From Macrostomum lignano (Eukaryota), in assembly GCA_002269645.1 (NCBI GenBank), contig NIVC01000583.1, positions 186,001-250,000 on the forward strand: a DNA stretch of 64,000 nt, read 5' to 3'. Below are positions 35,631 to 50,600 of this stretch, piece after piece. The notes under the pieces were generated by a model. The model was not told where the DNA came from. It saw only the letters and a list, made by a program, of their open reading frames with translations, and searched no databases. Made by a program: the position numbers and the translations under genes. Every line of letters starts with the position of its first letter. Position 1 is the stretch's first letter.

Positions 35631-38600
35631 ATGAATCGTGGAATGCCGCGGAGCACTGAAGCAGCAACTGCAGCTGTGCCATCGGTTGCTGCTGCCACAG
35701 TCGCCGCCGAGGCAGCCAACAGGCGTCTGATGGCTGTCCGGCTGCACCAGCTGGCGGCCGGACTGACAGCGCACGGACTCAGCCGGGTGGTGGGCGAGGC
35801 AAGCCAGACTGGCCGCCTACTCTGGCTCTCTGTGTTCACCTGCGCTCTGCTGGGAGTGAGCCAGCACACTGCCAGCCTGGTGAAGCTCTATCTAAGCTAC
35901 CCTGTCGGATCCACAGTTCGTCAGGAGGTCAACGGTTTTGAGTTCCCCGACGTCACCTTGTGCGACTCGATGCTGAAGAAGTTCTTCCTATACAATGTGT
36001 CGTATTTTGATAGCGCGCGAGACAAAAGTTTTACAAGGTGACTTTTTTTATTCCACTGTACATAGTCTTAGAGAAAGCGGGGATTCACCTACACCTGAGT
36101 TCGTTTCAGATGCATGTAGAAATGCAGGGTTACATGTAGATGGGGAAGGACGGTCTAGAAATCAAGTTTGGCTACATGCAACTTGAACAATTCAAATGAG
36201 AAGGCATCGGTGAGTGTAGCCAAAAACGATCAGGCCCGGATCGAACCGAATGCAATCGGTAACTTTTTGCGAAACCAGTGAACTAGTTTCTAGATATCCA
36301 GCCCTTTCAAGTCGACCTTTTACTCCTGGCTCGCTTGAGTTGATATCCCCATTAAACTGAAAAAAATTAGGTCTTCTTTTAGTCTGCTTCTTTTAGTTTT
36401 TGTTTAAATTAAGGCTCGTTCACACTGCATGCTGTTGCGTGATCAACTACGTTGGCGCCCCTCAAAGACGGCCGGCCCCCTAAGTAAAAATCCTTGCTTG
36501 TACATACATGTAGTTCTTCGTCGCTTGGAACATCAGTCGCGTGGTTTGACGACTCAATTAGTGTCTGCCAGGCTGTTTGAACGAGCTTTAATTATGCGAA
36601 AGTCATCAGTGGATTTGCATCAATTGCTACCCAGCAACACCATGATCGATTGATTGTAACCTGATTGATTGATTGATTGCTGACCTCAGACTCCCAACCT
36701 CCGGGTTTTTTTCAACCCAAATATCTGAGTCATGTATCAGTTTGTTAATTTAAGAAGCACCGGCCAAACCTGCAGGTATTCGCAGGTCATCCAGACTCTT
36801 CTTGGCTACAAGTTCGGCTGGGAGACGAAAGCTTTCGTCAGAGCCACGTACACAGCCTCCGGCCACAAGTTCAACATGTCCAAAGTCAGCGCCAGAGTTC
36901 TTGACTTTCTGCTCCACTGCGAGTTCGATCACACCGCCTGCGACTTTGGAAACTTCAGCCTCTACTATGACAATCAGTTCGGCAACTGCTACACGTTCAG
37001 GCCGGCCTGGCGGCGTCTGGGCAGGGCTGGCGCCTCCGCCGGCCTCATCCGAAGGCGTATTCAGCATGCCAGTGAAGTATGAGACAGACTAGGCCCATGG
37101 GCTAAGGTCTGCGATGCTTCACGCCTGCCCCTATCTTCAGCAGGTCAAGGCTGGTGGGAGGTCTGCACCCTCTATTTGCCTCTGGCAGCCGCAGACCCCC
37201 CCCCACGCTGTCTCGCAAGTCGACCCAGGGTACTCGTCCCCGCGTGTGTTCAAGGCAGTCCCTAGGGCTGCTGGACAGACTGGGCTCCGGCGCTGGCGAC
37301 CCTATCCAGTGGCTTCGGCCGAATTTGGGTATGCGGGTCTGGCTCGCCAACCTGCAGGCCGTGGTACTGCTCAACGTACTCTCTAATGCCTAAGGTGTTG
37401 ACCGTGCCGATGGGCTGGAAGGCCGGGGAGTAGTCCGGTCGCAAGCGGTCCCCCTCCTGGTGTCGGGCCAGCCTTGAGGGTGCTATTGGCCTACTGCCCG
37501 GTCAGGTGGAGCGGCCGGGTGGGTACCGCGCCCCTTTGAGGGTAGCCCACCAACCTTTTATCATGGCCTTCGAGCCGACTATGGATAAACAAGCTATTTC
37601 TAGGGACGGGGACCCTTCTAAACCCCAACCTCAGTCCGAAGGACCGGCCGGCCCTGCTGGCAGATCCCAACCGACTGATTCAACTGTGGCAAAGGAAGGA
37701 CCGGCTGGCTCTGCTGGCAGATCCGACCAGAGCTACCAAACTCAAAATACCCTAAGACCTGCCAGCTCCGCTGGTGGATCTAAGGGAACCGCGAGCTCTG
37801 AGCCTAAAGGACCGGCCAAATCTGGCAGATCCGATGAAGCTCAGCGGGCTCGGCTTGAGCGCAAACGCGCTAAACAACGCGCCAAAAGGCAGGCCAAGAA
37901 GGGAGCTGCGGGGGCCAAAGCGGCGGCGTCCACCATGGATGCTGAAGCGACTGGAGTCCCAAGGCAACCAGGCGGGCCGGCCGGTGGAAGCTCCAGTAGT
38001 TCAGCGGCGGCGCTCCCTGGAGCTGCTGCCGCGGCTGCTGAGGCCGAAACCACGGCGCAACAAATGGCCACTGCCAACAAGGAGGTTCCTTCGGGAGCTA
38101 CCTTTGCGGCGAAGGCCAAGGCCAAAATCCCGGGAGTGATCATCCAAGGTCGCGACCAGGACTGGACCACTGATCAGCTTCAAAAAGTGTGGAGTGCTGT
38201 TGACTCCTATCTGATTGAGCTGACTGTCGAGGAGGGAATCTCCATCGGCGTTGAGCGGATGGTGCTGCGAAGCACATTCGTTCTTATTGCTCCTAGCAGC
38301 GAGGAGGACGCTCGGCGGCTGCTCCAGCGGCTACCGACGGTCTCCTTGGATGCTGACCTTGGTGGAGCTCTTTTTCTTCGCGAGGGCCAGCGTCCAAAGA
38401 CGATACCCTATGTGGTTTTCGTCCCTGCTAAGAGCACCGCAGCTGGACCAGACGTTATTCGCCGGGTCCTACTGCGTCTGAACCCCGACCTCCCTGCTAG
38501 TGGACTGGTGTATCACCGCAAAGTCCGCAGGGGGGAGACGGGCAACTCAATTGTCCTCGGCCTTTCCAGCACTTGGGCGAGTCGGTACCCTAATGGATCC

Positions 38601-47600: not shown

Positions 47601-50600
47601 TCAAATTCATTTACATGAGAGCACCTGCTAAGCGGAACCTTGTCCCGCATAGCGATCTGTGCCTCAACTTTCTCAACGAGTGTCAGGCCAATCGCGTCTT
47701 CACCGATGGCATTGCCTCAACGCTCAACCTGAGACAGCGCTACTCCGTAGCTATCGACTCGCGCGATAACATCAATGACCATTGGAACCCTGGTGAGCTT
47801 CATTGCTACACCGACGGTTCTAAGCAGTCAGCCAACACCGGCTTTGGTGTTGGAATCTTTCTGAACGGGAGGGTCATCGCTACCCACGCTCAATACACTG
47901 GGGTCAACTCCAGTGTTTTCCAAAATGAAGTTCTGGCCATCAGCTCCTGCACTGCAGAGCTTCTCGCCACTGGCGTTACTGGTAAGAACATCATTTTCCA
48001 TTCGGACCGCCAAGCTGCCTTGCACGCCATCAGTGGCTGCAGCACCAACTCTGCTACAGTCCTTGACTGTATCAAACTCCTCAATGTGTTGGGTTCCGCC
48101 AACAAAATTACCCTTAAGTGGGTTCCGGGGCATGTGGGGATCCGAGGAAATGAGTTGGCTGACACCCTTGCAAAAGTTGGTGCCTCCGGCTCCTCTCTCG
48201 GCCCCGAACCTCTTGTCCCGATTCCTGGCTGTGTCATCGACTCGCGCATCAAAGCGTGGATCAGGACTCAGCACCGCTCGACTTGGGCGAACCGCACGAA
48301 CTGCAGGCAATCCAGAGGCGCTGTCCCTCAGCCCTCTCACCAGCTCCGGAAGCTCCTCTTGCGCCTCTCGCGCAGAGACATCCGGGCTGCCACCATGACC
48401 CTCTCTGGTCACGGCTGCTTCTCCAGGCACCAGTACCTGCAGGGCAACGCCACCAACGCCACCTGTAGTTTCTGCAACTCAGGTGACGAAACCGCTGAGC
48501 ATTTCGTCAGCATCTGTCCCGCCTTCACGCGGGCCAGACTCACTTACCTCGGGCCACACACATCTATTACTGAAGCGTGCAAACCCGAAAACTTTAATCA
48601 GCTCATGCGCTACCTTCGGGCCACCCGCAGGGCTGAACTCTCCTTTCCAGAGAGCACCATAGCTGCTGGCGACACTGGGGGACCTCCCTGGGCGGCGCCA
48701 ACCCTCCGTCCATAGCGACGCGTCGGCCGTTCAGGGACTAGCGGAATGGGCGCCCGCGCCTTCCCGCTGTGTCCCCTCCGGGACAGCCCTGCAGCTAAGT
48801 CAAGTCAAAGTACATAGTCTTAGAGAAAGCGGGGATTCACCTACACCTGAGTTCGTTTCAGATGCATGTAGAAATGCAGGGTTACATGTAGATGGGGAAG
48901 GACGGTCTAGAAATCAAGTTTGGCTACATGCAACTTGAACAATTCAAATGAGAAGGCATCGGTGAGTGTAGCCAAAAACGATCAGGCCCGGATCGAACCG
49001 AATGCAATCGGTAACTTTTTGCGAAACCAGTGAACTAGTTTCTAGATATCCAGCCCTTTCAAGTCGACCTTTTACTCCTGGCTCGCTTGAGTTGATATCC
49101 CCATTAAACTGAAAAAAATTAGGTCTTCTTTTAGTCTGCTTCTTTTAGTTTTTGTTTAAATTAAGGCTCGTTCACACTGCATGCTGTTGCGTGATCAACT
49201 ACGTTGGCGCCCCTCAAAGACGGCCGGCCCCCTAAGTAAAAATCCTTGCTTGTACATACATGTAGTTCTTCGTCGCTTGGAACATCAGTCGCGTGGTTTG
49301 ACGACTCAATTAGTGTCTGCCAGGCTGTTTGAACGAGCTTTAATTATGCGAAAGTCATCAGTGGATTTGCATCAATTGCTACCCAGCAACACCATGATCG
49401 ATTGATTGTAACCTGATTGATTGATTGATTGCTGACCTCAGACTCCCAACCTCCGGGTTTTTTTCAACCCAAATATCTGAGTCATGTATCAGTTTGTTAA
49501 TTTAAGAAGCACCGGCCAAACCTGCAGGTATTCGCAGGTCATCCAGACTCTTCTTGGCTACAAGTTCGGCTGGGAGACGAAAGCTTTCGTCAGAGCCACG
49601 TACACAGCCTCCGGCCACAAGTTCAACATGTCCAAAGTCAGCGCCAGAGTTCTTGACTTTCTGCTCCACTGCGAGTTCGATCACACCGCCTGCGACTTTG
49701 GAAACTTCAGCCTCTACTATGACAATCAGTTCGGCAACTGCTACACGTTCAGGCCGGCCTGGCGGCGTCTGGGCAGGGCTGGCGCCTCCGCCGGCCTCAT
49801 CCTGCTGCTGTACCCACCATCGGTGGACGCTAATTTTGACGAGGATCGGACAGTCAAGACAGTCACGGGGCTGGAGAATAGAGGCTTCCAGGTCTGTTTG
49901 CAGTACCTACCGGTACCAGTATATGTACATGAACTCCACTTATAGCAGTACATTCACATGTAGCAAGGCCAATACCGCTAATACCTGTGTTGTACCTGTG
50001 CTTCTCCGGCTGTCTAGCACAGTGGTTTGGGCTCTCCGCCTTCTCAACCGGAAGCCTTCTCGTAGCTCTTAGTAGCGTAGGTAATGCTGCCAACAGTTCC
50101 TTCAGGTCTTGGCCTTCGGTGAGGTGAGCTTCCCGTCAGAGTGAAATAAACAAGTCAACGAACTCAGCACAGCGTGCAGATTTGAAGATTAACGAACAAA
50201 GCGTCTGGTCAGCAGATCCCATGAGTGGTTGGGAATACCGTATTAGCTTCCTTTTAGGCTTGGGCGTCTAAGTTTAGTCAGGCCAATGAAGAAAGAGTGG
50301 ATTGGACAATGGAACTGTCAGAAAAACTTAGAAAACTGGGAAAGGAGGAACTGAGAAACTAGACACTAAGAACTCCTTGACTGAACCAAGGGTGAGGGGG
50401 TCCGTATTTATAGTCTGGGAATCCCCCAGTGCACCTTTGTGCGCGAGACCTCGTGACTTGTTCCATTTTTAGAACTGACGTCACTTCCCGCCAGAGAGAA
50501 GGCAGGGGTCCCCAGGCAAAGTGCACAGGGCCGTGTGACTCAGTGTCTAATTTTAGAAACATGAGTCACCTCTTACCTTAGAGGAGGCAAGGGCCCCAAG

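Follow-up and report, generated by a model that had tools for sequence, protein, structure and literature searches.

Nested LINE insertions bracketed by 0.5–1 kb direct repeats of their target DNA in Macrostomum lignano

The DNA analysed here, a window of 64,000 nucleotides from Macrostomum lignano (assembly GCA_002269645.1, contig NIVC01000583.1, positions 186,001 to 250,000 of the forward strand), holds two long interspersed nuclear elements (LINEs), called A and B in the following, of which B lies inside A. Each of them is bracketed by a long direct repeat of the DNA into which it is inserted, 993 bp in the case of A and 476 bp in the case of B, and both repeats abut their element precisely. 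Chance comes nowhere near explaining perfect repeats of 0.5–1 kb that meet both ends precisely in two different elements. The best explanation, which we consider probable, is that two full-length LINEs inserted very recently in the germline through target-primed reverse transcription (TPRT), each with a giant target-site duplication (TSD).

The repeat pairs were determined by self-BLAST of the whole window and by exact string comparison, and the junctions were read from the sequence. The two copies of the outer repeat, which flank A, agree at 993 of 993 nt (100%). The copies of the inner repeat, which flank B, measure 476 and 477 nt and agree at 476 of 477 positions (99.8%), with the sole discrepancy, an indel, in a C3/C4 homopolymer at around 39707/45575, where the left copy is short of one C. 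This deletion in the C4 run of the left copy, at around 39707, may be a consensus error of the assembly. Outside every boundary of both pairs identity drops off immediately, the outer and inner pairs are unrelated to each other by self-BLAST, and the window contains neither N bases nor gaps. For A as well as for B, the left copy stops at the 5' leader of the element and the right copy starts directly after its 3' tail. The coordinates which a first-pass annotation of this DNA had given for the two long direct repeats (993 bp for A, 476 bp for B) proved to be exact in both comparisons; they are collected in Table 1 together with those of the other features of the locus.

At the 5' side, the junction of A reads ...CTCATCC/GAAGGCG and that of B ...CATGAAGAC/AATCGCC, with the slash marking the boundary. 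At the 3' side, A is joined to its target as ...AAGTCAAGTCAAA/GTACATAG, while the left edge of the outer repeat reads ...TTCCACT/GTACATAG; for B, the corresponding sequences are ...GTAGTAAGTAAGTAAG/TAACACAAAC and ...CTCATCTC/TAACACAAAC. Tail and target hereby overlap by GT in A and by TAA in B, and both overlaps match the repeat units of the respective tail. The first-pass annotation had described them as 2–3 nt of microhomology. The overlaps are indeed present and fit the tail units, whereas the pairing itself is unprovable from one copy of each element; possibly they reflect the short primer–template pairing expected for such tails. Since the true 5' termini of A and B lack confirmation from other copies, microhomology at the 5' junctions cannot be demonstrated. 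When A and B (n = 2) are compared, no motif common to the sequences at the first nick and at the second nick is visible.

Table 1. Features of the A/B insertion locus (positions in the window)
Feature	Position	Strand	Evidence
Upstream ASC coding exon, GT donor 36038-36039 (AG/GTGA)	35550..36038	+	Open frame; same gene as the Pfam ASC exon
Left 993-bp copy (A target): host intron and beginning of the following ASC exon, acceptor inferred at 36753/36754	36058..37050	+	
A, 5' part: 5' untranslated region (UTR) 37051-37505, open reading frame (ORF) 1 37506-39068, start of ORF2 with APE from 39108	37051..39615	+	ORFs, Pfam
Left 476-bp copy (B target): A ORF2, APE end and linker, 1-nt C-run deletion at ~39707	39616..40091	+	Self-BLAST, tblastn
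B: 5' UTR, ORF1 40653-41576, ORF2 41576-45394 (APE, reverse transcriptase (RT), RNase H), 3' UTR, (TAAG)n tail	40092..45483	+	ORFs, Pfam, UniRef
Right 477-bp copy (B target): in frame with the remaining A ORF2	45484..45960	+	Self-BLAST, ORFs
A, 3' part: ORF2 RT and RNase H, Cys/His-rich C-terminus, 3' UTR, (AAGTC)n-like tail	45961..48809	+	ORFs, Pfam
Right 993-bp copy (A target): contiguous with the remaining ASC exon	48810..49802	+	Self-BLAST
Rest of the interrupted ASC exon, then GT donor	49803..49890	+	Frame; Pfam ASC on ORF 49484-49945

The content of the repeats identifies them as target DNA, in agreement with the first-pass annotation, which had taken each element to be bracketed by a repeat of the DNA it landed in. 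The outer repeat comprises intron and exon sequence of a host gene for a DEG/ENaC (ASC) channel; it begins 20 nt past the GT donor, and its exon encodes the DEG/ENaC signature FGNCYTF. The ORF at 49484-49945 matches Pfam PF00858 (ASC, amiloride-sensitive sodium channel family), and the reading frame of the ASC exon runs uninterrupted from the right outer copy into the adjoining flank, giving GASAGLI/LLLYPPS across the reconstructed empty site. The inner repeat consists of coding sequence of A's own ORF2, from the end of the APE domain into the linker, and tblastn with the ORF2 protein of A matches both of its copies. For both elements the reconstructed empty site has the form L-X-R, X being the duplicated segment. 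A lies in an ASC coding exon and B in the ORF2 of A, and each points in the direction in which the unit it hit is transcribed. A search with two ASC exons against a collection of 5.8 billion proteins, M. lignano included, returned no homologues of the host gene at E<=1e-10, so that the ASC exon boundaries and the frame across the empty site rest only on the sequence and on the Pfam match. Either the ASC gene (35550-53900, plus strand) is missing from the public proteome annotation, or the word filter of the search missed its homologues.

Once B and one copy of the inner repeat are taken out, A measures 5,891 bp. It starts with a 455-nt leader, followed by an ORF1 of 520 amino acids and an ORF2 with APE, RT and RNase H domains, which Pfam detects spread over the two halves of the element, and it ends in an (AAGTC)n-like tail (...AAGTCAAGTCAAA). 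The ORF2 is then one open frame except for a 1-nt frameshift at around 39525; its C-terminus, judged by eye from the translation, is rich in Cys and His (CX2C...H...C) with no Pfam match, and the stop lies at 48715. The frameshift is situated in the APE domain and outside any homopolymer. This suggests that A may be a defective copy, which would have been mobilised in trans or mutated during reverse transcription.

B measures 5,392 bp and is seemingly of full length, with an ORF1 of 307 amino acids, an intact ORF2 of 1,272 amino acids (Pfam Exo_endo_phos_2, 5.5e-22; RVT_1, 2.5e-30; RNase_H, 5.4e-13) and a (TAAG)n tail. Its ORF2 is 95-100% identical over long stretches to many M. lignano UniRef proteins, which marks B as a high-copy, recently active family. 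In dozens of M. lignano UniRef gene models (P0004-P0060), fragments of B are fused with GPCR, C-type lectin, thioredoxin, sphingomyelinase or PiggyBac transposase domains. These predicted fusions with host sequence are probably due to GTAAGT, a consensus splice donor, inside the (TAAG)n tail.

Both elements place ORF1 before ORF2, end in a simple-repeat 3' tail and lack terminal repeats of their own, as LINEs do. The Pfam domains of both and an ORF2 protein identity of about 40%, with no nucleotide similarity in self-BLAST, bear out the first-pass description of A and B as related non-LTR elements (LTR, long terminal repeat) with APE, RT and RNase H; they are related yet distinct families of APE-type, RNase H-bearing LINEs. 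The APE-type endonuclease together with the predicted RNase H assigns both to the I/LOA/R1 group, within which LOA-like is a plausible label. No further member of this clade is present in the 64-kb window. The nearest annotated relatives are DUF4780-APE-RT-RNase H elements of Drosophila palustris, with about 35% identity, next to a spider protein automatically named R1-type. Pfam finds no domain in either ORF1 and no restriction-like endonuclease (RLE) in either ORF2, where an APE-type endonuclease is the only one detected and about 170 amino acids past the RNase H domain, in which a Cys/His-rich motif is recognisable by eye, have no match. Baggins, which like Bilbo and Lian belongs to the LOA clade, reportedly carries a self-cleaving ribozyme like that of hepatitis delta virus (HDV) at its 5' end, a description attributed to Ruminski and colleagues in 2011. 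Between 35500 and 50500, no ribozyme was matched by Rfam at E<=1, whose models detect HDV-like ribozymes poorly, and the first 140 nt of A and of B fold no better than shuffled sequence. Two sucA-II Rfam matches lie below threshold and were dismissed as chance.

For elements on the plus strand, a left repeat copy before the 5' end and a right copy after the 3' tail correspond to the polarity of a TPRT target-site duplication. Both A and B show this polarity, as the first-pass annotation had seen in noting the geometry of target-primed reverse transcription, and from it we infer TPRT itself together with a distant second-strand step. In such a scheme, the bottom strand would be nicked at the left edge of X, and the 3' OH would prime cDNA synthesis on the simple-repeat tail of the element RNA. 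A top-strand event would follow at the right edge of X, such that the joining of the far end of the cDNA and the priming of the second strand are displaced downstream by 993 bp in A and by about 476 bp in B, where 5-30 bp is usual. As the long single-stranded regions are filled in, the intervening target DNA would then be copied onto both sides of the element. The distance could arise along three routes. The top strand could be nicked far downstream or offer a pre-existing 3' end there, such as a replication fork or an R-loop might provide; the end of the cDNA could switch template or invade the top strand or the sister chromatid downstream; or the upstream end could be extended by repair synthesis before it captures the cDNA. 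All three yield the same product and cannot be distinguished from the sequence. A diverged homeologue is disfavoured as the source of the copy by the identity of all 993 bases. A distant top-strand nick has been discussed for L1 (Servant et al. 2017, PMC5223499), and invasion of a sister-chromatid 3' overhang by the cDNA is a model for L1-bridged tandem duplications (Rodriguez-Martin et al. 2020, PMC7058536). Precedents, namely Dualen-4b_cRei, L1 in cells deficient in nucleotide-excision repair (NER), ZfL2-2 and the L1-bridged duplications, make it clear that kilobase TSDs can result from TPRT. Support for giant TSDs at the present locus comes from the fact that two independent events are seen, in families only 40% identical. 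Owing to the homopolymer indel between them, the two copies that flank B were moreover called as separate sequences.

Several points weigh against this interpretation. The locus is known from an assembly; the public M. lignano assemblies derive from noisy PacBio reads, and the genome itself consists of more than 50% repeats and is partly duplicated in large blocks. A and B are about 5.4-5.9 kb long and multi-copy, which makes a join across two different copies conceivable, and their 5' ends are each read from one copy. In addition, a single insertion is seen per family, and the Drosophila relatives (L003 and L002, see below) make ordinary short TSDs.

The last two points bear above all on how general the phenomenon is. 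The first-pass annotation had taken the two events to suggest a family-level mechanism, for which two insertions are too few. The sample comprises one insertion per family (A, n = 1; B, n = 1), both share one locus, and the window was chosen for this very feature. Whether long TSDs are the usual outcome for the A and B families or for their host stands at about even odds. In a more specific form, the APE-only LINEs of the I/LOA/R1 group in M. lignano would routinely uncouple the second-strand step, so that germline insertions are regularly accompanied by duplications of 0.5-1 kb; this we hold tentatively, at somewhat less than an even chance. Alternatively, A and B normally make short TSDs and the window has caught two rare accidents, both perhaps favoured by a transcribed or fragile local context, to which we would give a substantial minority chance. 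Rare long TSDs are known in ordinary LINEs (less than 10% of L1 insertions in HeLa, 1 of 25 for ZfL2-2), and the selection of the window as well as the short TSDs of the Drosophila relatives fit such accidents. On the other hand, the window holds two insertions of this clade, from two families, and both carry long duplications; the joint chance would be about 1e-3 if the events were independent at a few percent each.

Further M. lignano copies were sought beyond the window. Exact-protein look-ups with B ORF2, B ORF1 and A ORF2 returned nothing, and neither the 3' end of B nor that of A had a match in metagenome scans. Among 39 M. lignano UniRef models with B fragments, 12 have host sequence on both sides, and none of these 12 shows the same host peptide on either side of B. 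This is a weak test, since splicing in these models starts from within the GTAAGT-containing tail, so that a right-hand copy would be passed over.

The closest comparison is provided by D. palustris. Its element L003 (10890-16295, about 5.4 kb) has an ORF1, an ORF2 with APE, RT and RNase H domains of about 35% identity, and a (TAACC)n tail. Alignment of its filled site with an empty site 9.2 kb downstream yields a TSD of 9-12 bp (TAATTAACTTAT). At the second D. palustris copy, L002, whose 3' end is well defined and the same as in L003, no long flanking repeats were found. These elements resemble A and B in their APE-RT-RNase H architecture, their length of about 5.4 kb and their repeat tail, and differ from them in their ordinary TSD of 9-12 bp. 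Giant TSDs are thus not a general trait of this LINE group. A relative on an ENA contig (L001) was set aside, being old and broken, with a single flanking repeat of 76% identity that is another dispersed repeat. As for the surroundings of L003, its flanks (10133-10889 and 16296-16600) and the segment 19379-20423 represent two 100%-identical sequence copies of at least 1 kb, one of which holds the element, and the region is bordered by 154-bp satellite arrays (8797-9404, 23304-24771). The 5' end of the L003 element (GGTCGGC...CCTCG...CGAGG..GCCGACT) could, by eye, form HDV-like P1 and P3 helices; Rfam gives no match.

At the locus itself, an assembly chimera has to be weighed, in which two insertions of the same family are joined through their identical 5-6 kb element body such that the 5' junction of one is mispaired with the 3' junction of the other. 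For B, this would involve two different copies of A, and for A two haplotypes or homeologues of the ASC locus. Error-prone PacBio assemblies, a genome of more than 50% repeats with large duplicated blocks and multi-copy elements are the setting in which such a join could occur, and both the 1-nt homopolymer difference and the frameshift are compatible with residual consensus error. However, a chimera demands two insertions of the same family in the same orientation within 0.5-1 kb, and this twice over; the entire structure of B spans 6.3 kb and is thereby within reach of single PacBio reads; the window is free of Ns and gaps, and the 993-bp copies are identical, as a single locus predicts. Taking both versions together, we regard a chimera as unlikely. 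Far less likely still is a history in which two independent insertions arose close together and then recombined unequally through the element, or in which the element entered an already present tandem duplication precisely at its junction. The same final arrangement would result, and nothing specific speaks for such a course; a base-exact coincidence would be required twice, once inside the ORF of another transposon, and repeats that are 100% and 99.8% identical leave no time for multi-step histories. Element-borne terminal repeats, whether LTR-like, pseudo-LTRs of Penelope-like elements or of the TART type, are superficially suggested by 0.5-1 kb direct repeats around an RT-encoding unit and are ruled out, with a negligible residual chance, by what the repeats contain: the outer one an ASC intron and an exon whose frame continues into the right flank, the inner one APE and linker coding sequence of A, the two pairs being unrelated.

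If insertion with giant TSDs were routine, each event would amount to a local tandem duplication of host DNA, and a hit in an exon could be turned into a hit in an intron by means of the duplicated splice acceptor. At the present locus, the right outer copy and its flank, as predicted from the sequence, rebuild the 3' part of the intron and the whole ASC exon. An intact channel mRNA could therefore still arise if the donor at 36038 were spliced to the acceptor inferred at 49505/49506, with A and B skipped. Flanks of 0.5-1 kb would also make the insertion reversible through precise loss by homologous recombination, as noted for L1 (PMC5223499). In repeat annotation, such insertions could be miscalled as LTR elements by LTR-finding tools; LTRharvest was used in the annotation of M. 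lignano. Second-strand cleavage and 5' joining are the least understood steps of TPRT. If kilobase TSDs were common in a natural animal, they would provide a handle on the second-strand step and on whether the element or host repair determines its distance, the latter being suggested by the L1 results in NER-deficient cells.

Apart from the A/B locus, the window contains an unusual density of minisatellite arrays (within 1-20100, 29578-29791, 58129-58312 and 59225-59818). Examples are those at 1-1561, 2557-2896 (28-bp unit, 98-99% identical), 4511-5307 (19-bp unit), 9666-10066 (41-bp unit), 18051-19134 (28-bp unit) and 59225-59818 (33-bp unit). Several of the arrays coincide with long ORFs, among them segments of a minus-strand CCAR/DBC1-like gene (16429-20679; domains SAP, LAIKA, DBC1 and S1-like). 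An inverted repeat of 112 bp with 95.5% identity, whose arms (26445-26556 and 27684-27794) are separated by about 1.35 kb, has the appearance of terminal inverted repeats, as in a small DNA transposon or miniature inverted-repeat transposable element. On either side of the ASC gene lies a dispersed direct repeat of 230 bp with 87% identity (34869-35098 and 53281-53510). It belongs to a genome-wide family and is not a TSD, since its translation (QPQLLRGASEGCVR.FSPR) occurs within unrelated M. lignano UniRef models such as P0006. Two tandem paralogous intronless ORFs on the minus strand (55734-57143, 469 amino acids; 60076-61443, 455 amino acids) carry MFS_1 and Nodulin-like domains and share about 73% DNA identity.

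The first-pass annotation had regarded the locus as a candidate new system, starting from the premise that TSDs of non-LTR elements measure about 5-30 bp. While this length is the norm, kilobase TSDs are documented in several LINEs (Dualen-4b_cRei, L1 in NER-deficient cells and ZfL2-2), so that the phenomenon as such is not new. The size range is matched by Dualen-4b_cRei of Chlamydomonas reinhardtii, of which more than half of the de novo insertions are flanked by duplications whose median length is 900 bp (Lopez-Cortegano et al. 2023, PMC9977147). These were read by the authors as exceptionally long TSDs and attributed to the two endonucleases of the clade, RLE and APE (PMC9977147). As in A and B (993 and 476 bp), target duplications of hundreds of bp abut both ends of the element. 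In contrast, Dualen-4b_cRei belongs to the Dualen clade of a green alga and combines RLE with APE, where A and B show APE only, and its frequency was measured in mutation-accumulation lines as compared to n = 1 per family here.

Among APE-type LINEs, L1 in XPA-, XPC- or XPD-deficient human cells makes TSDs of more than 100 bp in 57-91% of cases, 38% of which exceed 1 kb, as compared to less than 10% above 100 bp in HeLa (Servant et al. 2017, PMC5223499), and 1 of 25 ZfL2-2 insertions in DT40 cells has a TSD of 1,228 bp (PMC2666801). L1 and ZfL2-2 share with A and B an APE-type endonuclease and, where the second nick is shifted, TSDs that range from 0.1 kb to above 1 kb. They differ in that these are engineered assays in somatic cell lines, with the L1 effect tied to the host genotype and not to the element, whereas A and B inserted naturally in the germline and are fixed in an assembly. 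R9 of bdelloid rotifers is an RLE-bearing member of the R2 group. It targets 28S rDNA site-specifically and leaves a fixed TSD of 126 bp (Gladyshev and Arkhipova 2009, as cited in PMC9977147). Its TSD is likewise much longer than usual and is reproducible, whereas the lengths in A and B vary (993 and 476 bp) and their targets are non-specific. In the L1-bridged duplications of tumours (Rodriguez-Martin et al. 2020, PMC7058536), one L1 lies between two copies of the duplicated segment as A and B do, but these events are of megabase scale, somatic and rare. In conclusion, A and B work like the known long-TSD cases and differ from them in representing a natural animal germline, an APE-only endonuclease and two nested instances. 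Should such insertions prove frequent, they would be the first natural, APE-only case in an animal germline, and dual endonucleases would not be required for kilobase TSDs.

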